Sequence record: LR756502.1 | Reading direction: 5' to 3' (one strand) | DNA: 64,000 bases | Shown here: positions 4,226-58,853 of the stretch, piece by piece | Layout: each line of letters opens with the position of its first letter | Numbering within the stretch: position 1 is the first letter of the stretch | Notes under the pieces: model-generated | Databases searched by the model: none | Seen by the model: only the letters and a program-made list of their open reading frames with translations | What the model was told of the DNA's origin: nothing | Program-made: the position numbers and the translations under genes

Positions 4226-4528
4226 ATGGAAAATATTGTAATAGGCATATGTCCTATTTGTGAAAGAGAAATGTGGAAAGATAAGTTTGTCAATAGACAT
4301 CACTTTCTTCCAAAATCGAAAGGTGGGAGAGAAACAGAGTGGCTTCATAAAATTTGTCATAGGAAAATTCATTCTATTTTTACAAACACAGAGTTAGCAA
4401 AAGAGTATAATAACCCGGAGGTTGTAAGGGCTCATCCAGAGATTGATAGATTTATTAAATGGATATCTAAAAAGGATCCAGATTTCTATGATGGAAATAC
4501 AACACATAATAAAAAAGGAAGACTATGA
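4226..4528 (+). CDS. HNH endonuclease family protein
   Basis: CPIC..NRHHFLPKSKGG..LHKICHRKIH. Confidence 0.8.
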   Translation: MENIVIGICPICEREMWKDKFVNRHHFLPKSKGGRETEWLHKICHRKIHSIFTNTELAKEYNNPEVVRAHPEIDRFIKWISKKDPDFYDGNTTHNKKGRL

Positions 4529-4854
4529 TAGTTATACTAAAAATGAAAATTACATGGAATGGATGGTCACAGCCATATTTAGCATCAGAGTCATATGCTG
4601 TTGATGCTACTGAAGTTGTTTGGATATATGAGAATTTGGATGAGGCGAGTAAGGGAAATTTAGAGTTTATGAATAGATTATCAAAAGGACCAATGGAACA
4701 AAGAGGATATAAGAAAATGAGAAGGGGTAAAAACACTGAGCAATATGCTATTGACTTATCATTTAATGGTGTAAAGGACAACATCTATTTGATAATTGAG
4801 GAAAAAATTAGACCAATGGTTAGAGAAAATAGATTAAATAACATTTTAAAATAA
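4525..4854 (+). CDS. Hypothetical protein with C-terminal tag (VRENRLNNILK)
   Basis: ORF track; shared C-terminal motif. Confidence 0.6.
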   Translation: MIVILKMKITWNGWSQPYLASESYAVDATEVVWIYENLDEASKGNLEFMNRLSKGPMEQRGYKKMRRGKNTEQYAIDLSFNGVKDNIYLIIEEKIRPMVRENRLNNILK

Positions 4855-5259
4855 TAAAGACATGGAATCAATTTATGCAAGATATAGAACAGGTAACCAA
4901 TCATTTTCAATGACATTGGAGTTGATACAAGAATTAATATCAGCAAGAAGTTGTAGAAAAGTTTGGGTACAAGGGTGTAACTCAGGTAGATCTACACTAG
5001 TTTTCACTATATTTGGTGAGGGTCTATATACTTGGCCTTTACCAGACTATAGAATAGAGACTGTATCATTTGGTAGTTTTAGACAATATAGACCAATACC
5101 TGTAAGTGATAGACCAGAAGACACTGCTCTATATGAGACGGAGATTAGACTAATTGAAGAACTGATTGCGAGACTAGGCACAGGTCCACTAAGTGGAGTT
5201 ATTTCCTAATTTGGAAATTATCCTTATATTTGTTTTATACTAAAAAATAATTACTTACT

Positions 5260-5595
5260 ATGAGTATTAAAAAATTTGAAAATTTTGAAGATGAATTTGA
5301 TGGAGAAGGAGTTGATAAAAGTGAGATTACTATGAAGGTTGCTGATACATCTACTTCACAAGAAGAATGGCAACAATATATGGCTCAGGATGGAGTTACA
5401 CTTCTTGTCTCAGCTTGGTATACAAATGCACAATATATGGTTGATTCTGAATTGTCTTTTATTTATCCAGAGTTGGAAGAAATAGAAGGATTGTATGACC
5501 TACAAGAAGGGTGTATGGAATATTCAGGACCCTTAACTGCCCAACAAATGGTTGATGAATTAATTAGATTAGGATTTAATGCGGTAATTGAATAA
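5260..5595 (+). CDS. Acidic hypothetical protein with N-terminal tag (MSIKKFENFE)
   Basis: ORF track; shared N-terminal motif. Confidence 0.6.
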   Translation: MSIKKFENFEDEFDGEGVDKSEITMKVADTSTSQEEWQQYMAQDGVTLLVSAWYTNAQYMVDSELSFIYPELEEIEGLYDLQEGCMEYSGPLTAQQMVDELIRLGFNAVIE

Positions 5596-5657
5596 TTATC
5601 CGTATATTTGTAAAACAGAAATTAAACTATTTAATAATATAATATATAATAATCGAA

Positions 5658-5765
5658 ATGAAAACTTTGCACACATATAAAAACGTGATTGACTGGATGT
5701 AAATATCCCGGCTACATAATTATATGTATTCCCAGTCAATAAAAATTGACTGGGATTTTTATTTT
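5658..5765 (+). promoter_or_regulatory. Attenuator 3: leader MKTLHTYKNVIDWM (5658-5702) + terminator (5729-5765)
   Basis: ATTGACTGG (5688-5696) is the exact complement of terminator arm CCAGTCAAT (5732-5740); operon contains RNA ligases and HisRS core. Confidence 0.65.
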
Positions 5766-5789
5766 AAAAAAATATAAAAATGTAAAGTT

Positions 5790-5988: not shown

Positions 5989-6186
5989 ATGGCAACACAT
6001 ACAAATACACTAACCTCACATCATGGTGAGAGTAGAACATCTAGAGCAGATAAAATGTCTGGTTGGATATCAGAATATAAAAGAATATTTGGTAAATCGG
6101 GAACATCGATGAAAACTGCCAAGACAATAAGTAATAGGAAAAGAAGAATGTTCTTAAAGAACAAAAAAAATTGGACAAAATTATGA
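5989..6186 (+). CDS. Small basic hypothetical protein
   Basis: 65 aa ORF, overlaps next gene. Confidence 0.55.
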   Translation: MATHTNTLTSHHGESRTSRADKMSGWISEYKRIFGKSGTSMKTAKTISNRKRRMFLKNKKNWTKL

Positions 6187-6836
6187 AATCATACCCGAGT
6201 ATAGACTATTTTGATAAAGGACTGTTTGGTGATACTGTTTGGGTATTCGACAAATTGGATGGATCAAATCTTAGAATGGAGTGGAACCGTAAGAGAGGGT
6301 GGTATAAATTTGGAACAAAGTCTGTAATGATTGATGTTAGTAATCCAGATTTTGGAGAAGCTATTCCTATATTTATGGAGAAATATTCCGATGATTTAGA
6401 GAGAGTATTTAAGAAAGAATATTCCAATGTTGAAAGCATTGTTGTTTTCTGTGAGTTTGTTGGAGACAACTCATTCGCTGGTCAGCATCTTGCTTCAGAT
6501 AAGAAGGATGTAGTTCTTTTTGATGTTAATCTTTATAAGAAAGGATTTATACATCCAAAAGATTTCCTCGATAACTTCGGACATCTCCATATACCCAAGT
6601 TGGTATATAAAGGAGAATATAATGACGACCTTATCAAAGATGTTAGAGATAATATCTGGGGTCTAAAAGAAGGTGTAATATGTAAAGGAGTTAGAAAAAC
6701 AAAAGGTGACCACATAGTCTGGATGACTAAGATTAAAACCATCGAATGGTTAAATAAAGTAAAAGAAAAATATGGAGAGAAGGCTCTCCTTGAAGAATTA
6801 AACAATAATAAAAAACTATTAAATTATGGAAATTAA
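6171..6836 (+). CDS. RNA ligase-like nucleotidyltransferase (Rnl2-type core)
   Basis: Motif I KLDGSN, CEFVG, LFDV, EGVICK, KIK. Confidence 0.75.
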   Translation: MDKIMKSYPSIDYFDKGLFGDTVWVFDKLDGSNLRMEWNRKRGWYKFGTKSVMIDVSNPDFGEAIPIFMEKYSDDLERVFKKEYSNVESIVVFCEFVGDNSFAGQHLASDKKDVVLFDVNLYKKGFIHPKDFLDNFGHLHIPKLVYKGEYNDDLIKDVRDNIWGLKEGVICKGVRKTKGDHIVWMTKIKTIEWLNKVKEKYGEKALLEELNNNKKLLNYGN

Positions 6837-7458
6837 ATTAGAATCAACGTATAAAGGAACTCGAATATTATTCGCTGAATCAGCTAAAAGAAAAAGAGAT
6901 ATATTAAATAAGATGATTGAAGTTCTTGAGTCCTATGGGTATCAGGAAATTATGATTCCTATTATTCAAAAACAAGAAACATTCCAATCAAAGGTGGGTG
7001 CTGAAAATCAAAACATGATGTTTAACTTCAAAGATAGAGGTGATCGTGATTTATGTTTATCCCCAGAGTATACCGCAATCGTTCAACAACTTGCTAAAGA
7101 GAAATTCAAATTCACAAACAATGTGAAGATGTTTTATATCGGTGAGTGTTTTAGAGGAGAAAATACACAAGCTGGAAGATGGAGACAATTTACTCAGTTT
7201 GGTGTTGAGATTATAAACCCAACAAAGGACTATTCTGATGAGATGGTTGAAATTGCTGGAAAACTAATTGAGTTAGTTACAAAAAATTATGAGACAAACC
7301 TAGATGCAACTCGTGGACTTGACTACTATAAAGGTGGTAAAGGATTTGAAATAGCTTGTCCAGAATTAGGTTCATCAAAGCAAGTTTGTGGCGGTGGTAC
7401 TTATGAAGGTGGTTTGGGATTCGCAGTGGGTGTTGATAGACTACTATTATGCAAATAA
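6826..7458 (+). CDS. hisS: Histidyl-tRNA synthetase catalytic core only (210 aa)
   Basis: LSPEYTA, motif 2 FRGENTQAGRWRQFTQFGVE, GLDYY, motif 3 GFAVGVDRL; no anticodon-binding domain. Confidence 0.8.
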   Translation: MEIKLESTYKGTRILFAESAKRKRDILNKMIEVLESYGYQEIMIPIIQKQETFQSKVGAENQNMMFNFKDRGDRDLCLSPEYTAIVQQLAKEKFKFTNNVKMFYIGECFRGENTQAGRWRQFTQFGVEIINPTKDYSDEMVEIAGKLIELVTKNYETNLDATRGLDYYKGGKGFEIACPELGSSKQVCGGGTYEGGLGFAVGVDRLLLCK

Positions 7459-7721
7459 GAGAAATAAAAATATCACTCCAGCAAAAGGACGGATATCTCT
7501 ACTTCAGAACTGGATCAGATCCAGTTGAAGTTGAAGTGAAGATAGAATTTGGCACTGCTAAAAATCTGAGGGATTTTTTACATAGTGGTGAAAAACTATG
7601 CAGTGTAGATAAAAATCTTGTGAAGATAATAAAAATTAATAAAATGAGACATACCTCTGTTGAGGCAACAATACAAAAAATTACTCTAAGAGAGTATAAT
7701 TTAGAAAGGTTACTATTATGA
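7449..7721 (+). CDS. Hypothetical protein with C-terminal tag (LREYNLERLLL)
   Basis: ORF track. Confidence 0.55.
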   Translation: MQIREIKISLQQKDGYLYFRTGSDPVEVEVKIEFGTAKNLRDFLHSGEKLCSVDKNLVKIIKINKMRHTSVEATIQKITLREYNLERLLL

Positions 7722-8820: not shown

Positions 8821-9227
8821 TGGGACATTGTATAGATGTTTATCTGATTAATAAATCAGAGTTGAGAAATGGTAAAATTGACTCAGTTATATCAGTTAAT
8901 GATATCGCCGGAGATAATAATATTATTTGGACTGAGTTAAAAGAGGGAATTCTAGCTACCCCGTACATTAAAAATGTAAGAGAGTGGGGAAAGGGAAAGA
9001 CAATTGCTAAGATATCTACTGACTATTTTGGTGGTCCTGGTCACCAAACGGCTAAGCTATTCATTGATAATAATAAGGTGTATGATGCTAGTGATGAATT
9101 TGAATATAAAGAGGCTCCAATAAATGGTGTGTTGAAGATGATTGGTGTTATTGCTAAACCTGGTTCAGATGAATTTGATACAATTGGTCTCTCTAGATAT
9201 AGAAGTAATAATGATTTCAAAAAATGA
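8820..9227 (+). CDS. Hypothetical protein
   Basis: ORF track, coupled stop/start. Confidence 0.6.
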   Translation: MGHCIDVYLINKSELRNGKIDSVISVNDIAGDNNIIWTELKEGILATPYIKNVREWGKGKTIAKISTDYFGGPGHQTAKLFIDNNKVYDASDEFEYKEAPINGVLKMIGVIAKPGSDEFDTIGLSRYRSNNDFKK

Positions 9228-9763
9228 GAATTCCACCCGCAGCCGATATTGAGCCAATATTAACACTCGATGAAATTGATATAAAGCGTAATAAAGAAGT
9301 TACACTATCAAAAACCGATTGTTCTTTAGTTGCTAATAAAATAAGAGATCATCACGATAAGTATGATTTCTTTAACTCTGTTTTCCCTAAGTGTGCTGGT
9401 CAGCATTTCCTATATGAAAACTTTATTTATAGTCATGATGATGCAAATCACCTTAAAGTTAGCTATCCAAAACTTGGTATCTACCTAAATGCCTACCCTT
9501 GTGACCAAACTATTGAAGTTGAGTGGGTTGATCATCGAAGAACATGGGAATGGAATAGTAGATTCAGTGAGCACTGCTTTGTTGCTGAGCAAACATCTGA
9601 GTTAAAATATCTTCCACTTTGGAGTGACTCGATGATGATATATGGTGTTTGGGATAAAATGCCGGATTGGCGTCAATTAAAACAAGCATATGAGAGAACT
9701 TGGTGGTTTTGGAGAAGTCCGGAGGAGTTGAGAGATATGCAGATTAATAGACTATTAAGATGA
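9224..9763 (+). CDS. Hypothetical protein with C-terminal tag (LRDMQINRLLR)
   Basis: ORF track. Confidence 0.6.
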   Translation: MRIPPAADIEPILTLDEIDIKRNKEVTLSKTDCSLVANKIRDHHDKYDFFNSVFPKCAGQHFLYENFIYSHDDANHLKVSYPKLGIYLNAYPCDQTIEVEWVDHRRTWEWNSRFSEHCFVAEQTSELKYLPLWSDSMMIYGVWDKMPDWRQLKQAYERTWWFWRSPEELRDMQINRLLR

Positions 9764-10026
9764 TGGAAGAAGAAAAATATCACTTAATTATAAAAGAGTA
9801 TAAAAAATATGCTGTATCTATTCAGTCATATGAACTAGCCGCTCATCTAAGAGATATTGAGACAACATTTTTTAATGTATCATTACCAAATGTTCCGACA
9901 ACAATACATAACTATATCGGATTTAATAAGGATCTTTTAATTAATCACTTGAGTCTTTTACCACTAAAAGTAAAAGGATCAGAATTTATAATAAGAGATA
10001 TTAAACTAAGGGAGTTATTGGATTAG
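9760..10026 (+). CDS. Hypothetical protein with C-terminal tag (IRDIKLRELLD)
   Basis: ORF track. Confidence 0.6.
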   Translation: MMEEEKYHLIIKEYKKYAVSIQSYELAAHLRDIETTFFNVSLPNVPTTIHNYIGFNKDLLINHLSLLPLKVKGSEFIIRDIKLRELLD

Positions 10027-11505: not shown

Positions 11506-12339
11506 ATGATTAAACTTAAAACATACGAGGAGTTTAACTGGTCACCGGAAAGTAGCACCATAGCTGGATACGTATTTTCATTACTCGCTGCTAAAATAGG
11601 ATCAAAACTACTTCTAAAAAAGAAGGAAAGAGATAGTGTAAAGAAGATGATGAAAAATTCTATATACACAACATCCTCTAAATGGCTAATATCTGAAACC
11701 GGAGATTTGATAAACATATCTAATATAGATACAAAGAGGGTTTTTACTATTGATAAGAAAAATAGAACGATTGAATATAAGTCGGAAATTTATCCACTAA
11801 AAGCAAAATTAAATAAAAATGATATAACAGAAATAGTTGATAGTGTTTATTTTGCTAAAGATGTCTCTGAGTCAATAGATGATTGTTTCTATGATTTAGT
11901 CGATGAGGGATTTACTGTAACTCTTATATCCCTTAATTTTACTAAAAAAGCCTTTGCTATAAAAATAACACTGAAAGGTGATAGAGAAAGTTGGGGTAGA
12001 GATAGGACTATACCTATTCATCAAATAGGAGTTCAATTAAATGAGACTTTGCAAAAAATAATTGGACAGTATGATGTTGTTGTGGATGATTTACCTGGAG
12101 TAAATGATCTTACTCAGAGATATGGTGTAAGGTCTGTTCCTGATGATGGGTATATAGTTACTGAATATAAAGATGGGGTTATTAAAATTATCCCATTTAA
12201 TAGTGACCGAGATGTTGTTCCTGTATCATCATTAATATCTACTGACATTGATCTAATGGATATGCCTAATATATGGTCAAGTTTTGGTAAAGGTATACCA
12301 CAATTAAAGGCTCTTACAATACCATTTATAAAGAAATGA
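11506..12339 (+). CDS. Hypothetical protein with N-terminal tag (MIKLKTYEEF)
   Basis: ORF track. Confidence 0.65.
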   Translation: MIKLKTYEEFNWSPESSTIAGYVFSLLAAKIGSKLLLKKKERDSVKKMMKNSIYTTSSKWLISETGDLINISNIDTKRVFTIDKKNRTIEYKSEIYPLKAKLNKNDITEIVDSVYFAKDVSESIDDCFYDLVDEGFTVTLISLNFTKKAFAIKITLKGDRESWGRDRTIPIHQIGVQLNETLQKIIGQYDVVVDDLPGVNDLTQRYGVRSVPDDGYIVTEYKDGVIKIIPFNSDRDVVPVSSLISTDIDLMDMPNIWSSFGKGIPQLKALTIPFIKK

Positions 12340-12761
12340 AATATATAAAGACATTTGAAAATAATAAGCCCACGAAACAGTTGATTATAGATCAGTTGAA
12401 TTCTATAGTTGATGATGCTTTTGCTACTATAGAAGATGATGGATTTGAGATGGAACAAGGGCATAAGGGAACTAGAAATTGGGATATTGTTAGGGTATAT
12501 ACTAGACTTAATATAAAAGGTATTAATAGACTTCATTTTGTTGGCGAAGTTACTGGTGAGCATTGGAAAATGGCCACCTTTATTCCTTGTAAAATTAAAT
12601 ATGAAACATGTTTTAACTTAAACCCGGAGATGTATGATGATATTATAAAAGATGTTGAAAATGCTATGATTATGATATCTGGATTATCTGGGTTGAGTTT
12701 CAGCTTTAGCTTTACTAATTTCTATGGACAAGACAAAATTATATTTCAATTAAGAGTATGA
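12336..12761 (+). CDS. Hypothetical protein with N-terminal tag (MKYIKTFEN)
   Basis: ORF track. Confidence 0.65.
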   Translation: MKYIKTFENNKPTKQLIIDQLNSIVDDAFATIEDDGFEMEQGHKGTRNWDIVRVYTRLNIKGINRLHFVGEVTGEHWKMATFIPCKIKYETCFNLNPEMYDDIIKDVENAMIMISGLSGLSFSFSFTNFYGQDKIIFQLRV

Positions 12762-13222
12762 TGTATATAAAAACATATGAGAATTTCGATAATATTTTAT
12801 ATAGTATTGTTGGTGGATCAAAAGAGAACTTTGAGTTCTTGTCAAATTTTGATGCAATTCCTAGTATTGAATCATACCTAAGTAGCCCAAGAATTAAAAT
12901 TGTTGAAGCTAGATTAAATGATGAATTAATAGCATGTTCTATGTTTGTATTGAAGGAGAACTCAGTTCATCTTAATTATACCTTTGTTATTGATTCATAT
13001 AGAAACAAAGGAGTTAACCAAGGTCTAAAGAAAACTCTTGTGGATTGGTGTTCAAAAAACGGATATGCGAAAATTACTTGTAATGTAAGAGAGAGTAATA
13101 TACCATCTCTATCATCCTTGATTAAGTCTGGATTTAATATTAATACCAACTATAATGATTTGAAATACCCAGATGGAGAAAAGAAAATACCACTTTACTA
13201 TGAAGTATCTAAGAACATATGA
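12758..13222 (+). CDS. GNAT acetyltransferase with N-terminal tag (MMYIKTYENF)
   Basis: TFVIDSYRNKGVNQGL, NVRESNIPSLSSLIKSGF. Confidence 0.8.
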   Translation: MMYIKTYENFDNILYSIVGGSKENFEFLSNFDAIPSIESYLSSPRIKIVEARLNDELIACSMFVLKENSVHLNYTFVIDSYRNKGVNQGLKKTLVDWCSKNGYAKITCNVRESNIPSLSSLIKSGFNINTNYNDLKYPDGEKKIPLYYEVSKNI

Positions 13223-13769
13223 GGGATTTGATCACCTATCAGAGAGAGGTATTGATCCGAAGAGAACTTATTTTGTGCATGATGAAGAGTCTAATAATAC
13301 TTATTTCTTTCTATATAATCTAAGTGGTATTTGTGTTGGTTATCAGAAATATAATCCTGATAATGAGAAGGCTGGTGGTCTTGGTTGGATGGGTAGATAT
13401 TTTACAAAGGCTAATAAAGAAGCAACTGGTCATACTAAAATAGCTGTATATGGTCTGGAGACATATCAATTAGATAAAGACTATTTCTTTGTCGCAGAGG
13501 GTATATTTGATATAATTAAAGTTCATAATACTGGAGAGCCAGGAATTGCAAACCTTGGTTGCTCTCTATCTAATCAAGCTAAGAATTGGTATATGAGTCT
13601 GTCTCAAAAGAAAATTGTTATACAAGATAGAGATGATGCTGGTACCGAACTTGGATCAATTGGTGATTATATTTATACCGTTCCTGAACCATATAAGGAT
13701 CTTGGTGAAATGCCACAGTCTGAAGTAAATGAATTTATTAGAAATATTAAGAGTGAACTAGGAATTTAA
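13200..13769 (+). CDS. Toprim/primase-like protein with N-terminal tag (MKYLRTYEGF)
   Basis: FVAEGIFD, IQDRDDAG, YKDLGE; likely start ATG 13200. Confidence 0.65.
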   Translation: MKYLRTYEGFDHLSERGIDPKRTYFVHDEESNNTYFFLYNLSGICVGYQKYNPDNEKAGGLGWMGRYFTKANKEATGHTKIAVYGLETYQLDKDYFFVAEGIFDIIKVHNTGEPGIANLGCSLSNQAKNWYMSLSQKKIVIQDRDDAGTELGSIGDYIYTVPEPYKDLGEMPQSEVNEFIRNIKSELGI

Positions 13770-17259: not shown

Positions 17260-17343
17260 GGGAGTGCGCCAACGTTGGAGAGTTGGGCTAGTCTGTAAAA
17301 CTAGTGGCTTATGCCTGAGTGAGTTCGATTCTCACCACTCCCA
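17260..17343 (+). tRNA. tRNA-Tyr(GUA)
   Basis: CTAGT-CTGTAAA-ACTAG, V-arm. Confidence 0.85.
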
Positions 17344-17354
17344 CAAAGACAGAA

Positions 17355-17426: not shown

Positions 17427-17431
17427 CAAAT

Positions 17432-17513: not shown

Positions 17514-17522
17514 CTAAAATAT

Positions 17523-25268: not shown

Positions 25269-25861
25269 GTAGTTATTACGAAAAGTTTTTGAAACCCTGT
25301 CCTGTTTGTGATGGCTCTATTACGGATGATTCCTATGATAGGGGAATTAGATTTGGTTGTAAGTCTTGTGGATATACTAAGTCATATCCTGGATTGATTC
25401 AAAGTAAAGTAAGTTCAGTTCCTATGCCGATGGTTGATGGTGATGGAATGCCGATAGATCCAAAAGATGTTAAGCATCAGGAATACTATCACCAAAATGC
25501 TAATGATTTTGCTGTTGCTGAATTTAACAAGTGGGTTGATGATAGAAATTCTTGTATAGCTAGAAATTCTAAGATAGAGGATGTATTGAAAAAATCATAT
25601 GTTCTAAACGTTATTATTAATGGATTGACTATTTCAGTTGTTGGTATTTTCGATAATATGGAAGACCTTAATAAGGCTATCGATAAATGGGAATCTGTTA
25701 AAGAGATTAACTTTGAATTCTATTTCAATGAGTTGGAGTTTAACAAGGATGACTTATCTATGAATCCGGAAAGACACTTCACAAGATCGGAAATGGAAGA
25801 CATTCCCAAGGATATTATAAGAGATACTAAATTGAACAATATACTAAGTGAGAAAATTTAA
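25265..25861 (+). CDS. Zn-ribbon protein with internal and C-terminal tags (ARNSKIEDVLK; IRDTKLNNIL)
   Basis: CPVC..CKSC; probable fusion of two tagged modules. Confidence 0.6.
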   Translation: MSSYYEKFLKPCPVCDGSITDDSYDRGIRFGCKSCGYTKSYPGLIQSKVSSVPMPMVDGDGMPIDPKDVKHQEYYHQNANDFAVAEFNKWVDDRNSCIARNSKIEDVLKKSYVLNVIINGLTISVVGIFDNMEDLNKAIDKWESVKEINFEFYFNELEFNKDDLSMNPERHFTRSEMEDIPKDIIRDTKLNNILSEKI

Positions 25862-36141: not shown

Positions 36142-36501
36142 ATGAACCCCCAACTAAATAATATTGTAAATACTCCTCCTACTGGATTGGCTACTGGATC
36201 ATTAAGCTTTTCATCAACCCCGGTTGGTAAGATAGGTTGGAAGGAAATGGGTTGGAAGATAGGTGATGAGATTACCTGTCTACACAACATTCAAAGAGAT
36301 AGACCAAGTGAGGATTTCTGGGTAGATAGATTAACAATTGGTAAGAAGTATAAGATAGATGATCTTGAATGGAGATTTTTTGATAGAGTTTGTGTAGTTT
36401 CTGACTATAATAATCGAGCAGAGTTTGTCCCGGTAGAATTTTTCTTCGATACTATTGCTGAGAAGAGAGAAAAGACGATAGAAGATATACTTAAAAAATA
36501 G
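36142..36501 (+). CDS. Hypothetical protein with C-terminal tag (KREKTIEDIL)
   Basis: ORF track. Confidence 0.55.
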   Translation: MNPQLNNIVNTPPTGLATGSLSFSSTPVGKIGWKEMGWKIGDEITCLHNIQRDRPSEDFWVDRLTIGKKYKIDDLEWRFFDRVCVVSDYNNRAEFVPVEFFFDTIAEKREKTIEDILKK

Positions 36502-42779: not shown

Positions 42780-43254
42780 CGAGGAAGTACATATTATAAA
42801 AATTGGGGAAATAAATGTTGAACCATTCCACTATATAATGGTCGATGAAGATACAGATATTAGAAAGTATTATGTGGATATTTTAAGAGATCACTTACAT
42901 AATAATCTTAGAGATGATCAACTGAAAATTTGGCTACAACATAAGTTTAATGGGGATCGACATACGATTAGATTAGATAGAGATGTTAAAATAATGAAAA
43001 CATCGGGTATAATTAGACAACCTACTTTATCAAGGTATAATACATTTATTGGAATTAGTCAAGAACCTCTTATAGGAATACCTGATGATGTTCCTATTGT
43101 TGGTAGTAAATTTACAATTAACAATTTTTCTTGGGGAACATCAATAGTAAACTATAATATCGATAACATTATTATAATAACAAAAAACTCCGTTTATGCA
43201 ATACATAATAAATCACATTTCAGAGATACACAATTGAAATTGATAGGGATATAA
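42772..43254 (+). CDS. Hypothetical protein with C-terminal tag (FRDTQLKLIGI)
   Basis: ORF track. Confidence 0.55.
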   Translation: MNNEEVHIIKIGEINVEPFHYIMVDEDTDIRKYYVDILRDHLHNNLRDDQLKIWLQHKFNGDRHTIRLDRDVKIMKTSGIIRQPTLSRYNTFIGISQEPLIGIPDDVPIVGSKFTINNFSWGTSIVNYNIDNIIIITKNSVYAIHNKSHFRDTQLKLIGI

Positions 43255-46410: not shown

Positions 46411-46564
46411 CCCTCGGATAAAAATTCGAGGGTTTTTGTTTAAAAGAATTAATATATAACCTATGAGACACATGAAAAAATTTAATGCCCTCGGATAAAA
46501 ATTCGAGGGTTTTTGTTTAAAAGAATTAATATATAACCTATGAGACACATGAAAAAATTTAATG
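46411..46564 (+). repeat. Perfect 77-bp tandem duplication (terminator + TAATATATA + MRHMKKFN start)
   Basis: 46411-46487 identical to 46488-46564. Confidence 0.9.
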
Positions 46565-47460: not shown

Positions 47461-47467
47461 ATAAATT

Positions 47468-47953
47468 ATGAAACACTTAAAAAAATATAACGAGTCTGTA
47501 TCTGGTTCTAGAGAAGAATTAGTTAGGGATATAAATGCTATGTTTAAGTTTCATAGCAACTATATCTGTGGAATAGAATTCGATCTAAATAATATCGATG
47601 AGATAAATGATGAAATAGATGAGAATTTAATACCATCTAAATTTAGAGATGCTGCTGGATTCACAGCAGAAGAGAACTGTGAGAGAAGAAAGCAAGAAAT
47701 TAAAAGTCTATTCCTTAAATATAAAGGATGGATATTTGATAATAAAGAATCCTTGGGTGATAGTAAACACGATGGTGATTGGCATGAGTTCACGATTGAG
47801 ATAACTGACCCAGAAGGTAATATCTATATTGGTAGAGGTGATACTTGTCCAGCTGAGTCTCCACAAATCAATGAGATATCTGATAATGATGAAGAGAGAG
47901 ATAAAGCATATAAGAAGTATCTTAAGCTAAAAAAGAAATGGAATTTCAACTAA
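47468..47953 (+). CDS. N-terminal-tag protein (MKHLKKYNES)
   Basis: Shared motif. Confidence 0.65.
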   Translation: MKHLKKYNESVSGSREELVRDINAMFKFHSNYICGIEFDLNNIDEINDEIDENLIPSKFRDAAGFTAEENCERRKQEIKSLFLKYKGWIFDNKESLGDSKHDGDWHEFTIEITDPEGNIYIGRGDTCPAESPQINEISDNDEERDKAYKKYLKLKKKWNFN

Positions 47954-47954
47954 T

Positions 47955-48308
47955 ATGAAACACTTAAAGAAATTTAACGAAAATAAAATGGATGGACTGC
48001 AATTTACAATTGATGACTTTGAAGATGTGATGCAACTTCAATGGGAGAAATACAAAGGACTTGAAAAGTTATACAAAATAGTTGATATTGAAGTAGAAGA
48101 TACTGATATAGGTAAAGGCATAATAAATGCTAATGCTATTATAGAAAGACTATCTGATGGTAGATTTTTCAAATTTGAATACTCTCATGATGAGGGAAGA
48201 AATCCATTGAGTATAGGAGGATTGGCAAATCCAAGAACTATGATAGGAGTAGAAGTATATCCACATACAGTTACAAAGGTTGTATATAAAACAAAACCAA
48301 AAAGGTAA
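47955..48308 (+). CDS. N-terminal-tag protein (MKHLKKFNE)
   Basis: Shared motif. Confidence 0.65.
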   Translation: MKHLKKFNENKMDGLQFTIDDFEDVMQLQWEKYKGLEKLYKIVDIEVEDTDIGKGIINANAIIERLSDGRFFKFEYSHDEGRNPLSIGGLANPRTMIGVEVYPHTVTKVVYKTKPKR

Positions 48309-48310
48309 AT

Positions 48311-48487
48311 ATGAAATACTTAAAGAAAATTAACGAAGGTAATGATACTTACTTTGAGTATGATGTAAATGATACATCTACTTATAAAGGTCGAGATGTT
48401 GGTAAAATGATAAAAGACGTCTTAGATGCACTGAACATTGACTATACTAAGGATGATAATGAAGTCTTATTTTGGGTATCTTGGTAA
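48311..48487 (+). CDS. N-terminal-tag protein (MKYLKKINEG, 58 aa, not in ORF track)
   Basis: Read manually; shared motif. Confidence 0.6.
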   Translation: MKYLKKINEGNDTYFEYDVNDTSTYKGRDVGKMIKDVLDALNIDYTKDDNEVLFWVSW

Positions 48488-48526
48488 AATTGCTTAAATA
48501 TGTAAATCGATAAAAAATAAAATATT

Positions 48527-48874
48527 ATGAAACACTTAAAGAAAATTAACGAATCTAGTAATTATAAAAAACAAAATGACCTATTTATAAATACTAGAGT
48601 TATTGATGTTAGTAATATTAGAGATACTAATATCAGAGATATTATTTATAAATATGCTGAGAATAGAGTTCGTTCAAATAATTCATACTTTAAATACTAT
48701 GTTTGTGATACCGCTAAACACATATCCGAGGTTAAGGATATTAACAATATAATAAGATTTCCTAACCATAATCCTGATTATGTTTATGAAAGAGGAGATG
48801 ATCCTATAAGTGATTTCCTACTGGATAATGGTGCTAAACTATCAGAATCACTTATATTCTTAATAAATTGGTAA
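48527..48874 (+). CDS. N-terminal-tag protein (MKHLKKINES)
   Basis: Shared motif. Confidence 0.65.
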   Translation: MKHLKKINESSNYKKQNDLFINTRVIDVSNIRDTNIRDIIYKYAENRVRSNNSYFKYYVCDTAKHISEVKDINNIIRFPNHNPDYVYERGDDPISDFLLDNGAKLSESLIFLINW

Positions 48875-48876
48875 CT

Positions 48877-49437
48877 ATGAAACATCTAAAATCATATAAC
48901 GAGTCCGTTCAAGATGAAGAAGATGAGAAAGGTGACCGTATAGAAGTGCATCTTACCGTTCCTGTTTTCTCTGGTACTCCACTTAATCGTAAATGGACGA
49001 CATTTTTTTCATGCAGAAGGTCTAAGACTAATGATAGAGGACAATATGAAACAGTTGGTGGTTATGATGAACTCGAATTAAGATATTTTGATATTGTTTG
49101 GGAGAAATATGAAGGCAAAGAGATGCCTAATCGAGATATGAAGGGTGGTAGATTTAGTGGACTACTTGGTTATAAGGGTCCATGTAGACCAGAGTTTGAA
49201 GTATATCCTAAAGAGTTAATAGATGCTTTGTCTTATTTTGAAAATAGTTCATTTGTTACTGAATTTGAAAAAGGATTAAAGAAGAGATACTTTTCAAAAA
49301 GTAGTGGTGAGATAGACCCATTTCCTGATAAAGAAGAAATATCTAAAATGTCTCTGGAGTTTCAAAGTGAAGAAGATGCTTTTGATTGGTTAAATGATTT
49401 AGAATATCTTATTATTACCAACAAAATAGACTCATAA
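48877..49437 (+). CDS. N-terminal-tag protein (MKHLKSYNES)
   Basis: Start moved to the tagged Met. Confidence 0.65.
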   Translation: MKHLKSYNESVQDEEDEKGDRIEVHLTVPVFSGTPLNRKWTTFFSCRRSKTNDRGQYETVGGYDELELRYFDIVWEKYEGKEMPNRDMKGGRFSGLLGYKGPCRPEFEVYPKELIDALSYFENSSFVTEFEKGLKKRYFSKSSGEIDPFPDKEEISKMSLEFQSEEDAFDWLNDLEYLIITNKIDS

Positions 49438-49440
49438 AAT

Positions 49441-49860
49441 ATGAAACACTTAAGAAGATTTAATGAAAGTCTAGAAGGTAATCTAGAAGAGATAAATGAT
49501 ATATTTACAGTTGAAGTTGCTGATCATTTTAATTTAGTTAGAATATCATATGACGAATATAATGGTCAGGCTGAGGGTGGTGGACCACTTGAAAGAAATA
49601 AATCAACAGATCCATCAATTTATTACATTGAAGACTACTTTAGTCGGCCTGAACTAGATCCGGTAGGATTTGTAAGAATAGAAATGGCTATAAGTAATGA
49701 CAATGCTGAATTATTTAAATTAAAATATTTATCACTATTTGAGGAAAGATTATCAAAAATAGGATTTAAAATGAGTGTAAAGTATTATTACGGTAAGGTA
49801 AGTGGTAGAATATTCAGACGAAATTTTACCGAGGTAACTATGATAATAGAAGCACTATAA
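49441..49860 (+). CDS. N-terminal-tag protein (MKHLRRFNES)
   Basis: Shared motif. Confidence 0.65.
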   Translation: MKHLRRFNESLEGNLEEINDIFTVEVADHFNLVRISYDEYNGQAEGGGPLERNKSTDPSIYYIEDYFSRPELDPVGFVRIEMAISNDNAELFKLKYLSLFEERLSKIGFKMSVKYYYGKVSGRIFRRNFTEVTMIIEAL

Positions 49861-50211: not shown

Positions 50212-50286
50212 CGGAAATTGGGCTAATTGGTAAGCCGCTTCATTTGGGATGAAGACATCGTGTGGGTTCAAGTCCCGCATTTCCGA
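50212..50286 (+). tRNA. tRNA-Pro(UGG)
   Basis: CTTCA-TTTGGGA-TGAAG. Confidence 0.9.
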
Positions 50287-50291
50287 CAAAT

Positions 50292-50366
50292 GGCTCGTGG
50301 TACTGCACGGTGTGGTAACCTGTTTGTCAAACAGGATACAGATGGGATCATTACCCATACGAGTCA
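50292..50366 (+). tRNA. tRNA-Asp(GUC)
   Basis: CCTGT-TTGTCAA-ACAGG; unusual D-arm, A73. Confidence 0.8.
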
Positions 50367-50371
50367 CAAAA

Positions 50372-50443
50372 GGTCTATTAGTGAAATGGCTATCATCCCA
50401 CACTGTCACTGTGGAGTAGACGGATCGAAACCGTCATAGACCG
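50372..50443 (+). tRNA. tRNA-Asp(GUC)
   Basis: CCACA-CTGTCAC-TGTGG, G73. Confidence 0.9.
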
Positions 50444-50508
50444 CAAGAGATTAATTTGGAATCTTAAACCTTGCAAAAGCGAGGACTGGTAATATTTTAA
50501 TCTCATAT

Positions 50509-50583
50509 GGTTCGTGGAACTGCACGGTGTGGTTACTTGATTGTCAATCAGGACACAGACGGGATCGTTACCCGTACGAATCA
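50509..50583 (+). tRNA. tRNA-Asp(GUC), paralogue of 50292
   Basis: CTTGA-TTGTCAA-TCAGG. Confidence 0.8.
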
Positions 50584-50588
50584 CAAAA

Positions 50589-50662
50589 CGAGAAGTGACT
50601 AAGGCTTTAAGCACGGGTGATCAGGAGTCATCTGTTAGTGGGTTCAATTCCAACCTTCTCGA
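50589..50662 (+). tRNA. Atypical tRNA-Pro(AGG), C33/A37
   Basis: C1:G72, A73; GGTGA-TCAGGAG-TCATC. Confidence 0.65.
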
Positions 50663-53030: not shown

Positions 53031-53552
53031 ATGAAACATTTAAAAATATTTGAAGATTTTGAATATAAATCAATAACACCTGATGAGTTAAAAGGCTTGG
53101 TTGTTAAAAGAATATATCATAGTAGTAACGGATCATCTATTGTTGAGACAGATAAAGGTATATTTGATGTTGGTTGCATGGGTGGTGCTATGATATCATT
53201 TGAAGGCAGTTTAAGTATTGAAGAGGTTGTAAATAGAACAATAATTGACGTTTTGATGGAAGAAGGATCGATAACTCTAGTATTTAGTGATGGTGAAATT
53301 TCTTTTGTAGATGATACTGGTGGTGAAGGAGTTTCAGCTGATTGGGTAAATGAATCTAATGATTCAAAAATTGAGGACATTGAATTAAAAATTAAAGATG
53401 CTGCTTATAGTTTGAAGACATTTGGGACTATGAATAAACAAGGAGCTTTTATAAATGGTGCTAAATGGGCTATTCACAATTTAACAGATGAAGAGATAAA
53501 ATATATGAGAGAGAGCTCAGATTCGGAAGATCATAGTTTCTTTGGACTTTAG
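53031..53552 (+). CDS. N-terminal-tag protein (MKHLKIFEDF)
   Basis: Behind TAATATATA. Confidence 0.65.
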   Translation: MKHLKIFEDFEYKSITPDELKGLVVKRIYHSSNGSSIVETDKGIFDVGCMGGAMISFEGSLSIEEVVNRTIIDVLMEEGSITLVFSDGEISFVDDTGGEGVSADWVNESNDSKIEDIELKIKDAAYSLKTFGTMNKQGAFINGAKWAIHNLTDEEIKYMRESSDSEDHSFFGL

Positions 53553-53567
53553 AAAATAAATTAGTAT

Positions 53568-53885
53568 ATGAAACATTTAAAAAAATTTAATGAGTCTGAA
53601 ACTTGGTCAAGTGGTATTTCACTTGATGATGTAATTGAGTTTATTCATCCTTCAAATCCTATGGATTCACAAGAGTACTATTATTATATATGGGCTGATG
53701 ATGAGGTTTACTATGAATTTGCAAAATTGAAGGTACGTGATTATATGGATGTGATTAATCGTACAGTTTTCAAAGAAGAATCAAATACAGCTAAAAAGTT
53801 TGGTTATGATTTTATTATGACTAATCAAGAAGAGATATTAGATAAGTGTGAGGAATATTTAATATCTGATGGAGTTAGAAAATAA
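53568..53885 (+). CDS. N-terminal-tag protein (MKHLKKFNES)
   Basis: Shared motif. Confidence 0.65.
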   Translation: MKHLKKFNESETWSSGISLDDVIEFIHPSNPMDSQEYYYYIWADDEVYYEFAKLKVRDYMDVINRTVFKEESNTAKKFGYDFIMTNQEEILDKCEEYLISDGVRK

Positions 53886-53894
53886 AATTAGTAT

Positions 53895-54161
53895 ATGAAA
53901 AATATTAAAACATTTGAATTATTTAGTGATTGGTTTAAGTCTAAGGAACAAAATGCTCGTGAGGAGATGTTTGGTACAAAAAACTTAGAAAAAAAATCAG
54001 AAGATGTTCAGAAACTAATAGATGAGATAATACTAAACCAAGGTACTAGTTTAGATCACAGAAATGATAGATTTAAAGTGTATAGTGACGTAGAGTTATC
54101 AAATATGTCCGATGATGAAATTACTAGTATTTGGCAGCAAATAACTGGGAATAGGTATTAG
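53895..54161 (+). CDS. N-terminal-tag protein (MKNIKTFELF)
   Basis: Shared motif. Confidence 0.6.
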   Translation: MKNIKTFELFSDWFKSKEQNAREEMFGTKNLEKKSEDVQKLIDEIILNQGTSLDHRNDRFKVYSDVELSNMSDDEITSIWQQITGNRY

Positions 54162-55640: not shown

Positions 55641-55878
55641 TAATATATAAAAGTAAAATACTTATGAATAAAATTATGAAGGTCGCTAGTATTTCGTTTG
55701 CTTGGAGTATACTAATCGGTATATTACTCTTGTGTTTTAATAGTTACATATTTGAAAGAACAGATATTGCAATTATTGTTGGAGTTGGTAGTGTTTTTAT
55801 TGGTATGTTATCTTATGTGCTTGGATTTCTATCATTGTATTTGTATAGGATATCAAAGATAAGGTCAAGGAAAATTGA

Positions 55879-56259
55879 TTAGTGTTGATGATCCAGTACT
55901 TCTATTAGTGTTGATTCACGCCTTTCGTCTAGAGTTTTAATGTTCTCAATGAAGATGTAATTAAACTCAATTATATCATTAAACTCAGTTCTTATTGTGC
56001 TAAAGTATTCAAATGATTCCGCCATCTTGACGTTATCAAAATGAAGACCACTTAATATCATAAAGTTTATTGATTTATAGTTTCCGGTGCCATTGACTTT
56101 ATCATCTGATTGACTAACAAATAATTCTGATGAGTATGTAATTTTAATAGTATTTCCTTGTGTAATATGTACATGTAAAATTTTGCTAAATTTTGGACAT
56201 CTTAATGTTGTTAATCCATAGTAGTTAATGGGTATTGATGATGTATTTATGTAGCTCAT
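55879..56259 (-). CDS. Hypothetical protein with C-terminal tag variant (RRESTLIEVLD)
   Basis: ORF track. Confidence 0.5.
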   Translation of the reverse strand: MSYINTSSIPINYYGLTTLRCPKFSKILHVHITQGNTIKITYSSELFVSQSDDKVNGTGNYKSINFMILSGLHFDNVKMAESFEYFSTIRTEFNDIIEFNYIFIENIKTLDERRESTLIEVLDHQH

Positions 56260-56904
56260 TCAGAAAATATGTATTTATATTTATTATATATATCTTTATA
56301 TAGATAAGTTTAGGTATAATATATCTTGTGAAAATATTTTTTATAAAAATATCCCTTTGTTTATATGATACTTGAGTGGTGGTGAGGATGTCAAATTGGA
56401 TATTTTTTGTTATATTTGTAAAAATAGTTATATTTGTATGTTAAATTGTTTATATAGAATAAAATTTGGTAAACTATCCTCTGAGTTAAACGAAGAGTAT
56501 GATAGACTCTCTGATTATGAAAAGGAAAAAATATCAGATATTGATGCTGAAAGTTTCTTCGATTGTGATGATGAGAGTTCTGGTAGTTACTTTTGTTATA
56601 TAATTACTGATCCTATGGAGATGAAATCTTACTTATCTATATTAGATTCCAATTTAATAAGAGTTAAGTGTGATAACTTATCAAATGACATAATTAGCAA
56701 TAGAATAAATTTAGAAAAAGAATTAAAATCTCAGGTTAGTGCATTAAATTCAGTGAAGTATAGTTTCTTCATTGATGATGTAAAGGACTGGATATATAGA
56801 AACCTATCAATTGATACTGTTCTTGATAGGATATCAGAATCCGGTATGGATTCACTAACAGATGTAGAACTATTATTTTTAACCAATCTTAATAATTAAA
56901 ACCA

Positions 56905-57330
56905 ATGAATATTTACTTAGACGACTTGAGAGTTCCAAGTATGTCTCATAATAAGGACAAGGGACTTGGATATGCTTACTCATTTGAGTCTAAGTGGGTA
57001 ATTGTACGCGACTACTTTGAATTTGTTGAATTGATTAATAGTGATTTTGATAAAATAAATTTGATATCATTTGATCATGATTTAGCTTGCTTCAAAAAGT
57101 CACACGGTATTCGTGAGGAGTTTACTGGTAAAAGTGCGGTAGATTATTTAATAAACTTTTGTTTAGATAATAATAAAAAGTTTCCAGACTGGTATGTTCA
57201 TACTGATAATACCTCTGGAAGAGGAAATATTATTGGAGCAATACTTAACTATATGAAAGTTATAGAAGGGTATGATACTACCAATTTTAGATATTATAAT
57301 AGTGGTATATTTAATAATAAAATAATATAA
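56905..57330 (+). CDS. Cyclic-phosphate-processing receiver-like protein
   Basis: IYLDDLR.P, WVIVR, ISFDHDL, TG..A..L, VHTDN. Confidence 0.7.
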   Translation: MNIYLDDLRVPSMSHNKDKGLGYAYSFESKWVIVRDYFEFVELINSDFDKINLISFDHDLACFKKSHGIREEFTGKSAVDYLINFCLDNNKKFPDWYVHTDNTSGRGNIIGAILNYMKVIEGYDTTNFRYYNSGIFNNKII

Positions 57331-57652
57331 TGGCTAATTTTATAACATTACATATGGTTGGTAAAATATTTGATACCGTTAGGGTTAAGCAAAGAGCTCT
57401 AGGTCATGATGGATTCCTATATTTTAATGAGGTAATTGGTGCTGGTAAAATAAGAATTAATCGAATAAACTCTTATTTTCCTTATGAAAAAGAACAGATA
57501 GTGCCAACAAGTCTTAACTCTCTTAGAGGAGATGCCTTGATGGAGATATATGATAAGTTAAACTCTAATGAGTTTTATGTATATAAGAAGATAGATGGTA
57601 GGGATTGTAAAATGAGATTGAAATTTATACCAAGAATACCAAAATAATAATT

Positions 57653-58402
57653 ATGTTTGAGTTGGGTGATGTTGATTTTAAATATTCTGGTGTTGAGTAT
57701 GACTACCGGACCGAAAACTCTTGCGTTGAAAGTGGGTGTGATTCTATTTGTAGGTGTGGTGTTATAGTTGATGAGTGTGTTATTGGTGTAGATGTTTCTA
57801 TTCTATCTAATGAGATATATAATATGTATTTTGATAATTCAAAGTTAACTAAGAGAAATAATACAATAAATTCAATTCTTTATGGGACTGGTGAGGAGTT
57901 AGACAGATACTGTATTGATCGTATACTTAGAAGTCACAAGGTTTGGTTATCACATAATTGGGATATAGTGGTTGAAGGTGGTTATTATGGTCAGGAAATT
58001 GGTCATGTGAGACTTGAATCCAGAGTATCTAGTAAAATACAGGATGATATCAACGAAGTAATATCAATAAATACAAATGCTGGTAAAGTTGAGTTTGTTC
58101 TTAACCTTGAGTATGGATACATACTTCCTGAACTAGATGGATGTAATTATGAAATAGTTGATATTGATGTTAATAGTATTATCTTTGGTAGTATTGGTCA
58201 ATATAAAAAGGTACAAAGTGAGAAACTTGAACATTATATTGATATAAAATATAGTGGGCCAAGAGGTGTTGTGAAGAAAGACGGTGATAAATATAAGATA
58301 ATAGATGGGTATCACAGAATATATGCTGCTGGATTGACTAATAAAAATAAAGTTGGTGTAAATTTGATTAGAGTAATACTTGTTAAAGATGAAATTTTAT
58401 AG
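57653..58402 (+). CDS. Protein with C-terminal ParB/Srx-like motif
   Basis: YKIIDGYHRIYAA. Confidence 0.55.
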   Translation: MFELGDVDFKYSGVEYDYRTENSCVESGCDSICRCGVIVDECVIGVDVSILSNEIYNMYFDNSKLTKRNNTINSILYGTGEELDRYCIDRILRSHKVWLSHNWDIVVEGGYYGQEIGHVRLESRVSSKIQDDINEVISINTNAGKVEFVLNLEYGYILPELDGCNYEIVDIDVNSIIFGSIGQYKKVQSEKLEHYIDIKYSGPRGVVKKDGDKYKIIDGYHRIYAAGLTNKNKVGVNLIRVILVKDEIL

Positions 58403-58853
58403 CCACGGAAGTACAATTGGAGTTACCCTTTCTGGTTGGTTAGGTGTTCTAATATTGGTATATATAACTCTTGAGTGTTTGAGTATATTTATCTCTCACA
58501 CAACATTATTTCGTAGGACTTATCTATATTTTAAGCTAAGGAAGAAAGTTTCTAAAATTTTACCAGTTTGGTGGGAATTAGAATATGTTAGTTTTATTGC
58601 AATATCTAGAGCGAGCAGTCACACTGATAGGTATGTAGTTTATTTAAAAATTGTATCTAAAATATCACCATGTTGGATGGATAAAAAATCTTGGACAAAT
58701 GCCTTTATTTTTGTTGATAAAAATGGAAATATTGTAAACAAGTATGAGTTATTAAGAAGAACTGAGTTAGGTGACAGGGTAAATCAGGTAACTGATGAAA
58801 TGATAAATCAGTATGTTAGAGATAAATCACTAACTGATTTAGGAATCAAATAA
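58389..58853 (+). CDS. Membrane protein with C-terminal tag (VRDKSLTDLGIK)
   Basis: N-terminal TM helix. Confidence 0.55.
   Translation: MKFYSHGSTIGVTLSGWLGVLILVYITLECLSIFISHTTLFRRTYLYFKLRKKVSKILPVWWELEYVSFIAISRASSHTDRYVVYLKIVSKISPCWMDKKSWTNAFIFVDKNGNIVNKYELLRRTELGDRVNQVTDEMINQYVRDKSLTDLGIK

Follow-up and report, generated by a model that had tools for sequence, protein, structure and literature searches.

Why should some sixteen small proteins encoded in one stretch of a huge phage genome, most of them without resemblance to each other, end in nearly the same few residues? The initial annotation raised this question for a window of 64,000 nucleotides (bases 372001-436000 of LR756502.1, a 642-kb uncultured "Mahaphage" predicted to infect Bacteroidetes), and suggested that the shared ending is an amphipathic docking helix for one common partner, such as a scaffold, chaperone, protease adaptor or compartment importer. 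The observation holds, and it extends well beyond the window. The interpretation is only partly supported, since the properties of the tail fit such a helix but we did not identify a partner.

A C-terminal tail on about one in ten proteins

All sixteen carriers are present between positions 4525 and 58853 of the window (Table 1). The consensus of the tail is phi-R-[DE]-x-K-[LI]-[ND]-x-[IL]-[LG]-x; fourteen carriers match the tail profile at 5 bits or more and two are degenerate. The claim that ORF 25265-25861 carries the motif twice, as the scar of a fusion, is correct, the internal copy being degenerate. Three window carriers have an N-terminal membrane segment, not two as first proposed, and, as claimed, none has the N-terminal tag discussed below.

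Table 1. Tails in the window (window positions), with the ORFs that carry them
Position	Strand	Tail	ORF	Length	Remarks
4819..4848	+	VRENRLNNIL	4525-4854	109 aa	1 residue before the stop; 11.0 bits
7686..7715	+	LREYNLERLL	7449-7721	90 aa	Kept in the LR745206.1 orthologue
9728..9757	+	LRDMQINRLL	9224-9763	179 aa	
9991..10020	+	IRDIKLRELL	9760-10026	88 aa	
25233..25262	+	LRDVKINEVL	24882-25268	128 aa	
25559..25588	+	ARNSKIEDVL	25265-25861	198 aa	Internal, degenerate (aa 99-108), at the end of the zinc-ribbon-like N-terminal module; fusion junction
25817..25846	+	IRDTKLNNIL	25265-25861	198 aa	Terminal tail; 16.3 bits
26211..26240	+	LRDNKINKIL	25848-26246	132 aa	
26661..26690	+	IRDEYINSIL	26475-26699	74 aa	
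33401..33430	+	IREQKINQIL	33071-33433	120 aa	The very last residues
34464..34493	+	IRDIRLKKLI	34089-34499	136 aa	N-terminal membrane segment
35521..35550	+	LRDKKIETVL	35215-35571	118 aa	Followed by 6 more residues
35969..35998	+	IRDKKLDAIL	35576-36013	145 aa	Membrane-anchored
36463..36492	+	KREKTIEDIL	36142-36501	119 aa	Degenerate, below the profile threshold; ORF ends KREKTIEDILKK
43219..43251	+	FRDTQLKLIGI	42772-43254		LGI-type; homologues in IMG/VR end in LRDKKINDLGI
55894..55923	-	RRESTLIEVL	55879-56259	126 aa	Degenerate; ORF ends RRESTLIEVLDHQH; the LR745206.1 orthologue has the canonical LRDDRISEII
58815..58847	+	VRDKSLTDLGI	58380-58853		LGI-type; membrane-anchored

It had been stated in advance that the proposal would fail if the motif were no more frequent at C-termini than in composition-matched shuffles. 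Among the 994 non-overlapping ORFs of 45 aa or more in the whole record, the strict pattern [ILVFM]R[DE]..[ILVM]..[ILVM][LIG] matches 67 times, and 58 of these matches end within 8 residues of the C-terminus, whereas 300 per-protein shuffles give a mean of 0.24 C-terminal matches and a maximum of 2. A genome-wide profile of the C-termini, also called for beforehand, was built with 15 columns and finds 108 C-terminal tails at 5 bits or more (99-112 at 6-4 bits), against 0-1 in shuffled proteomes. The tail usually ends 0-2 residues before the stop, and 153 of 208 tails leave 0-2 residues after position 9. About 15% of profile matches, however, are internal or lie 11-25 residues from the end, so a free C-terminus is preferred but not obligatory.

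Could the signal reside in the DNA, as an embedded promoter, coupling signal or recombination site at gene 3' ends, or be a chance product of an AT-rich genome? Carrier genes do overlap the next gene somewhat more often than other genes (57% against 36%). However, codons at motif positions mirror genome usage (Arg, for example, is coded by AGA, AGG, CGT, CGA and CGC), exchanges among I, L and V and between D and E need multiple base changes, and other AT-rich huge phages of similar G+C have no tails. Together with the shuffles, these results refute both ideas for practical purposes, and selection acts on the protein.

Conservation, shape and bodies of the carriers

The tail is under purifying selection. 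It is better conserved than the rest of the protein (65% identity against 36% for the bodies in 26 orthologue pairs), and 26 of 32 orthologues keep it, with the ...ILx and ...LGI endings interchanging between orthologues. It is kept in a 634-kb relative and in IMG/VR relatives; the relative LR745206.1 has 55 strict tails. Two deep families keep it down to 33-40% identity. For the 179-aa ORF, all but two (apparently truncated) of 120 homologues, among the 129 found in metagenomes, end in ELRD[IL]QL[ND]RLLK-like tails, with R170 invariant in a 70-sequence alignment. For the 132-aa ORF, 10 homologues down to 33% identity keep the tail. In contrast, no tail was found in 874 ORFs of more distant huge phages whose ClpC is 58-64% identical, nor in 91 ORFs of the T4 early region.

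The conservation has alpha-helical periodicity, with a moment of 0.39-0.40 at 90-100 degrees per residue against 0.02-0.21 at other periods, and the conserved positions (R1, K4, L5, I8 and L9, with D2 at the edge) fall on one face of a helix. AlphaFold2 predicts a terminal helix in both carrier families, at residues 166-178 of the 179-aa protein (pLDDT about 90) and at residues 119-131 of the 132-aa protein, the latter with low confidence and without a confident placement.

The carriers are small, fast-evolving and mostly unrelated in sequence. Only three weak blastp pairs were found among 58 carriers, and Pfam and PHROGs gave only hits below the curated cut-offs. The bodies range from 65 to 622 aa and include zinc-ribbon-like, SH3-like, beta-rich and membrane-anchored types. 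An N-terminal membrane segment is present in 10 of the 108 profile-defined carriers; in those inspected it is followed by K/R, which places the tail in the cytoplasm.

An alternative is that there is no common partner, and that the carriers are one very old, explosively diverged paralogue family (or a few such families) in which the tail is simply the best-conserved element, a closing helix packed on each protein's own core. The high pLDDT in the 179-aa family suggests such packing there, so that part of the conservation could be structural. Carriers also occur in tandem arrays, which is typical of duplication, 9 of 208 carriers form a sub-family with a shared LxxGKxYxV beta-rich body, and the three weak body similarities lie just upstream of the tail. 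On the other hand, no similarity is detectable among the different body types, the invariant polar residues R1, D2 and K4 would not be needed to pack on different cores, and the two-module fusion protein keeps a tail at the end of each module. We consider this alternative unlikely. Less likely still is a membrane-targeting helix like the C-terminal helices of MinD or FtsA. The tail is a terminal amphipathic helix with K/R beside a hydrophobic face, but it has only 3-4 aliphatic residues, no aromatics, a conserved acidic residue and a near-neutral net charge; sequence-specific invariance of R and D is not expected for lipid binding, and about 9% of carriers already have a transmembrane anchor. 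Membrane binding itself was not assayed, and membership in this class is left undecided by these mixed features.

Promoter class and the N-terminal tag

Genome-wide, tail carriers almost never carry the N-terminal MKHLKxYNE-type tag (1 overlap against 11.2 expected). The claim that most carriers lie behind host-type promoters is only partly borne out. Genome-wide, operons with the C-terminal tail only score host-type in 14 cases (about half of the 31 assignable carrier operons), TAATATATA-type in 2-4 and none in 15, and in the window a TATATTT[GA]-type element could be assigned to the operon leader of only 2-3 carriers. Operons with the N-terminal tag only score TAATATATA-type in 36 of 40. The TAATATATA element, a putative late promoter, precedes the tail-sheath gene and the large-ORF block, and no carrier lies in the 160-200 kb part of that block. 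These timing classes rest on sequence motifs only, without expression data.

This distribution bears on whether the tail might be a virion-loading signal, a C-terminal analogue of the T4 capsid targeting sequence or of encapsulin cargo-loading peptides that binds the scaffold or the inner capsid surface. The concept is established, as diverse T-even internal proteins share only a capsid targeting sequence (PMC3012670), and like the tail this is a short terminal peptide on small, fast-evolving phage proteins, where it acts as an address tag. The capsid targeting sequence is N-terminal, however, is removed by the prohead protease and sits on late, packaged proteins, whereas the tail is C-terminal and on genes outside the putative late class; it is the N-terminal tag, nearly absent from tail carriers, that resembles the capsid targeting sequence, and the N-tagged genes are the better candidates for packaged proteins. 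Encapsulin cargo-loading and microcompartment encapsulation peptides are also terminal peptides or amphipathic helices of about 10-20 residues that load unrelated cargo onto one shell protein, and the ...DLGI endings recall some encapsulin peptides. Yet the tail lacks the GSL or LxxGSL-type consensus, no shell gene is linked to the carriers, and no HK97-type Phage_capsid match was found in the record. Three motif-bearing ORFs do lie about 3-4 kb upstream of the ClpP-like head-maturation protease, in the same gap-free plus-strand gene run. With ten carriers membrane-anchored and the promoter class against it, virion loading appears very unlikely.

A more far-reaching possibility, which we regard as doubtful although not excluded, is that the largest known phages run a two-label protein-sorting code. 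The N-terminal tag would mark about 10% of the proteome, behind the putative late promoter and probably virion-bound, and the C-terminal helix would mark another 10%, non-late accessory proteins delivered to one cytoplasmic hub, possibly the phage's own N-domain-less ClpC-ClpP machine. This would be a phage-encoded addressing system with no described counterpart.

Candidate receptors

Taken together, we propose, with moderate confidence, that the tail is a portable peptide of about 11-14 residues forming a short capped alpha-helix, which most likely acts as a common address or docking tag bringing non-late, cytoplasm-facing accessory proteins to one receptor. The analysis itself establishes selection at the protein level, modularity, helical periodicity, restriction to a clade, and exclusion from N-tagged proteins and from the putative late-promoter class; that a single receptor exists is our inference, and we have not identified it. 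The partner types first suggested were not narrowed with certainty, although promoter class argues against virion or scaffold loading.

Several known readers of short peptides were considered. The tail does not fit the bacterial beta-clamp-binding motif (QL[SD]LF or QLxLxL), since its consensus has no Gln or aromatic residue, and no DNA_pol3_beta_3 match was found in either phage. Nor was a PDZ_2 or TPR_12 match found in either phage for a PDZ- or TPR-read C-terminal peptide; host receptors were not examined. By analogy only, and without homology, the tail resembles eukaryotic and viral helical short linear motifs (LxxLL boxes, the MIM1 of ESCRT-III that binds MIT domains, and poxvirus PRANC/F-box tails), which are two- to three-turn amphipathic helices with a phi-x-x-phi-phi core flanked by charged residues, often at the extreme C-terminus, that dock many proteins onto one hub.

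The leading candidate is the phage's own Clp machinery. Both phages encode two full-length ClpP (260 and 233 bits), a ClpC-like unfoldase with D1, an M-domain (UVR motif), D2 and a VGF loop but no Clp_N, and ClpS. The tail might be a degradation tag by which ClpC-ClpP1P2 clears early proteins, or an SspB-like docking tail by which the carriers act as adaptors that deliver host targets to the protease. The SspB XB peptide, the ssrA tag and the MuA tail are likewise short C-terminal peptides on unrelated proteins, and are read by one unfoldase, but their sequences (LRVVK, LAA and RRKKAI) differ from the tail, which is a capped helix and often ends in D, K or N rather than in a non-polar, unstructured end. 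Only co-occurrence supports a specific Clp signal, neither binding to ClpC nor tail-dependent degradation having been measured here, and we consider that specific reading unlikely. Even the co-occurrence points both ways: all tail-bearing phages sampled have the ClpC, but 46 loci with ClpC at 58-64% identity have no tails, and N-domain-less ClpC homologues are far more widespread (more than 570 IMG/VR stretches) than the tail. ClpC therefore cannot be sufficient. The extreme C-terminal position on unrelated, small, non-late carriers, the cytoplasmic orientation and the presence of an unfoldase and peptidase do fit a degron or adaptor tail, and one tail-bearing ORF (111651-112091, ending IRNNKIDEVLGK) sits directly beside one clpP.

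A conserved C-terminal tail on about one protein in ten

The observation made in the initial annotation, that 16 proteins of the window end in a common motif, holds: all 16 carriers are present, although two of them (36142-36501 and 55879-56259) are degenerate. The motif was judged against whole proteomes, using the complete record and a 634,780-bp relative, LR745206.1. In a non-overlapping set of 994 ORFs of the whole genome, the pattern [ILVFM]R[DE]..[ILVM]..[ILVM][LIG] occurs 67 times and 58 of those matches end within 8 residues of the C-terminus, whereas shuffling each protein 300 times gives 0.24 C-terminal matches on average, with a maximum of 2. Several mechanical ORFs that overlap tRNA gene clusters are almost certainly not genes, and slightly inflate the ORF denominators used in these statistics. 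A 15-column profile built from the strict matches finds 108 C-terminal tails at 5 bits or more (99-112 at thresholds of 6 to 4 bits), with 0-1 C-terminal matches in shuffled proteomes. About one protein in ten therefore ends this way. The consensus is phi-R-[DE]-x-K-[LI]-[ND]-x-[IL]-[LG]-x and, in 153 of 208 tails from the two genomes, only 0-2 residues follow position 9. There are two endings, ...IL[DNK] and ...LGI, which replace each other between orthologs.

Selection acts on the protein and not on the DNA. Codons at the conserved positions follow genome-wide usage, with Arg coded by AGA, AGG, CGT, CGA and CGC, and with Leu and Ile spread over five or more codons. An embedded promoter, coupling signal or recombination site is therefore not the explanation, and a nucleic-acid signal or chance can be excluded for practical purposes.

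The tail is also modular. With the tail removed, the 58 strict carriers give only three weak blastp pairs, and searches of 16 window carriers and 10 longer carriers against Pfam and PHROGs gave nothing above the curated cut-offs, only a few weak sub-threshold hits. Carriers range from 65 to 622 aa, with a median of about 115 aa, and include a zinc-ribbon-like module, ten proteins with an N-terminal membrane segment (followed, in those inspected, by Lys/Arg, which places the tail in the cytoplasm), and a sub-family that shares a small beta-rich body with the signature LxxGKxYxV ... F/Y. In most members of this sub-family, which accounts for 9 of 208 carriers and is nine-fold enriched over other proteins, the signature lies 46-58 residues upstream of the tail. 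The fusion scar proposed in the initial annotation is confirmed, as ORF 25265-25861 is a fusion of two modules, each ending in a tail, the first being the degenerate ARNSKIEDVL at aa 99-108. Roughly 15% of profile matches are internal or 11-25 residues from the end, such that the C-terminus is strongly preferred but not obligatory.

Coordinates of features in the window and in record LR756502.1
Reference	Coordinates	Strand	Feature
LR756502.1	372001-436000		Bases to which the window is 100% identical
Window	36142-36501		Carrier with degenerate tail
Window	55879-56259		Carrier with degenerate tail
Window	25265-25861		Two-module fusion carrier
Window	9224-9763		179-aa carrier with 129-member family
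Window	25848-26246		Carrier of the second family
Window	25848-26246, 26475-26699, 36142-36501		Sub-family with LxxGKxYxV beta-rich body
LR756502.1	345860, 630763, 638078		Sub-family with LxxGKxYxV beta-rich body
Window	46540-49860, 53031-54161, 11506-13769, 58895-59491 and others		N-terminal tag (also genome-wide in LR756502.1)
LR756502.1	192321-196172		Tail-sheath gene (PF04984)
LR756502.1	157-199 kb		Block of very large ORFs
LR756502.1	363663-364265		Sigma-factor-like ORF (PHROG 1740)
LR756502.1	58607-59281, 112095-112817, 364437-365003, 440544-442667, 205085-205279	-, -, +, +, - respectively	Clp toolkit: two full-length ClpP, ClpP-like head-maturation protease, ClpC-like unfoldase, ClpS homolog
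Window	63101-63174		tRNA-like gene
Window	43688-46384		898-aa protein with CHU_C domain
Window	6171-7458		RNA-ligase-like ORF and following 210-aa ORF
Window	1184-1420, 1572-1757, 3554-3691, 17264-17644, 30552-30803, 50227-50614		Mechanical ORFs overlapping tRNA gene clusters

Conservation and predicted shape of the tail

The tail is conserved and specific to this clade. LR745206.1 has 55 strict tails and about 100 profile tails. In 26 ortholog pairs the tail is 65% identical and the body 36%, and 26 of 32 orthologs keep the tail. Relatives in IMG/VR have tails as well. The family of the 179-aa carrier has 129 members in metagenomes, on contigs up to 630 kb; every full-length member listed ends in ELRD[IL]QL[ND]RLLK-like tails, and the Arg is invariant. 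The second family (25848-26246) keeps the tail down to 33% identity; a search for loci related to this carrier found no relatives in IMG/VR and tblastn against phages found the record itself only. Around homologs of the phage ClpC, loci with 65% or higher ClpC identity carry tails (31-40 in 918 ORFs at thresholds of 4 and 2 bits), while loci with 58-64% identity carry none (0 in 874 ORFs at 2 bits or more). The expectation that T4-like phages have ...LGI endings was not supported, as no tail was found among 91 ORFs of the T4 early region (bases 1-50000).

The information content of positions 0-10 has an alpha-helical period, the moment being 0.39-0.40 at 90-100 degrees and 0.02-0.21 at other periods. 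R1, K4, L5, I8 and L9 lie on one face and D2 at its edge, while x3, x7 and x10 are variable on the other face. AlphaFold2 on the deep family of the 179-aa carrier gives a confident model (pLDDT 91.8) with the tail predicted as helix 166-178; a Foldseek search of this model against PDB returned no match at E <= 0.001. Whether the conserved face is buried in this model was not examined, which is the principal gap in the analysis, and the main alternative, that the tail is a structural closing helix of hugely diverged paralogs, is less likely than a docking role but is kept as a possibility. Membrane targeting is less likely still. In the shallower second family the tail is again predicted as a helix (119-131), but at pLDDT below 50 and after a low-confidence linker.

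Wider searches with the tail itself gave little. The ESM Atlas returned only scores of 0.83 to unnamed clusters, which is not informative, and the tail profile searched against 1.84 billion representatives gave two hits, both repeat proteins that sum many weak matches and are therefore spurious; a motif this short cannot reach significance in that library. Among sequence look-alikes, the SAP, HeH, Rho_N and UVR motifs fail on register, being off by one residue in hydrophobic spacing as judged by eye, and the ClpP C-terminal helix ...GxVDEIL looks similar but is a general feature of ClpP.

Genomic context, promoter classes and candidate receptor

A second, N-terminal tag (MKHLKxYNES-like; MKHLKKYNES / MKYLKTYKIFE-like) marks 103 of the 994 ORFs, and only one protein carries both tags, against 11.2 expected. 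Two upstream elements are enriched: TAATATATA, 20-40 bases before start codons, and TATATTT[GA], the Bacteroidota -7 type. The first precedes the tail-sheath gene and the block of very large ORFs, so we take it as the late promoter, although this is an inference. Of 40 assignable operons with only N-tagged genes, 36 are of the TAATATATA type and 4 of the host type (3 of these also being TAATATATA-type), whereas of 31 assignable operons with only tail carriers, 2-4 are of the TAATATATA type and 14 of the host type, the remaining carrier operons having neither element. A sigma-factor-like ORF just upstream of the head-maturation protease is a possible regulator of the TAATATATA promoter class. 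Tails are densest at 585-642 kb and 0-90 kb, which are contiguous on the circular genome, with 33 of 85 ORFs at 600-640 kb, and they are absent at 160-200 kb. Tail carriers therefore look like non-late accessory genes, while N-tagged proteins look like late ones. The sequence of the N-tag resembles the T4 capsid targeting sequence, so the N-tagged proteins may be packaged; the concept of such a targeting sequence is described in PMC3012670. For the C-terminal tail itself, virion loading is an unlikely role. The capsid gene was not found: PF05065 and Terminase_6C gave no hit, and PHROGs on the 158-185 kb block gave only a head-decoration match.

Both phages encode a set of Clp proteins consisting of two full-length ClpP, a ClpP-like head-maturation protease, a ClpS homolog and a 707-aa ClpC-like unfoldase that starts at the D1 linker. 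No Clp_N is found anywhere in the genome, but the unfoldase retains the M-domain (UVR motif) and a VGF loop. In known systems ClpS docks on the N-domain that this ClpC lacks. A tail-bearing ORF lies directly beside one clpP. This makes an adaptor-docking or degron role attractive, but the evidence is co-occurrence only, and, as binding of a tail to the phage ClpC was not examined, there is no binding evidence either way. The same type of ClpC is present in many huge phages without tails, and more than 570 related N-domain-less ClpC stretches exist in IMG/VR. No PDZ_2, TPR_12 or bacterial beta-clamp domain is encoded.

Interpretation and further features of the window

The finding is real and statistically overwhelming. 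Literature searches on huge-phage C-terminal motifs, Mahaphage, and docking or early genes found no description of the motif, and the Nature 2020 paper (PMC7162821) mentions neither Clp nor a protease. The proposal in the initial annotation of a docking helix for one common partner is partly supported. We favor, with no more than even confidence, a portable docking or address helix for one receptor, carried by non-late, cytoplasm-facing accessory proteins; within this reading the phage Clp system is the leading candidate for the receptor, but only tentatively. The recurrence of the tail, its selection at the protein level and its helical periodicity come directly from the sequences, whereas a single receptor and the late promoter class are inferred. 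Short terminal sorting or docking peptides are already known, and the tail falls among them, but its sequence and its scale are new and its reader is unknown.

Huge phages carry hundreds of small ORFans with no assigned function, and a single short peptide shared by a tenth of them gives a handle on all of them at once, since one pull-down with the tail could name the hub, and therefore the pathway, that about 100 proteins per genome converge on. If the hub is the phage's Clp protease, this would show that a phage schedules its own proteome, or destroys host proteins, through a private tag; if it is something else, it defines a new viral sorting signal. Together with the mutually exclusive N-terminal tag and the two promoter classes, the tail also gives a first temporal and spatial map of an uncultured 642-kb genome, and the tag may be usable as a portable targeting peptide.

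The unannotated 642,428-bp "uncultured phage" record is one of the four largest circularized genomes of the Mahaphage clade, which is predicted to replicate in Bacteroidetes (PMC7162821). The window is a translation-related region that holds 44 tRNA genes, Glu/Gln/Asn-type aminoacyl-tRNA synthetases, ribonucleotide reductase and an M28 peptidase. Several tRNA isoacceptors are duplicated, and for one of the 44 genes ARAGORN reports a tRNA-like gene with an undetermined identity (two-base anticodon "tt"). An RNA-ligase-like ORF (221 aa) is followed by a 210-aa ORF that matches only the first third of the histidyl-tRNA synthetase profile, a truncated or split class II synthetase-like protein. Finally, an 898-aa protein has a CHU_C type IX secretion signal domain and an Ig-like surface domain, which fits a Bacteroidota host and a phage protein exported by the host's T9SS.
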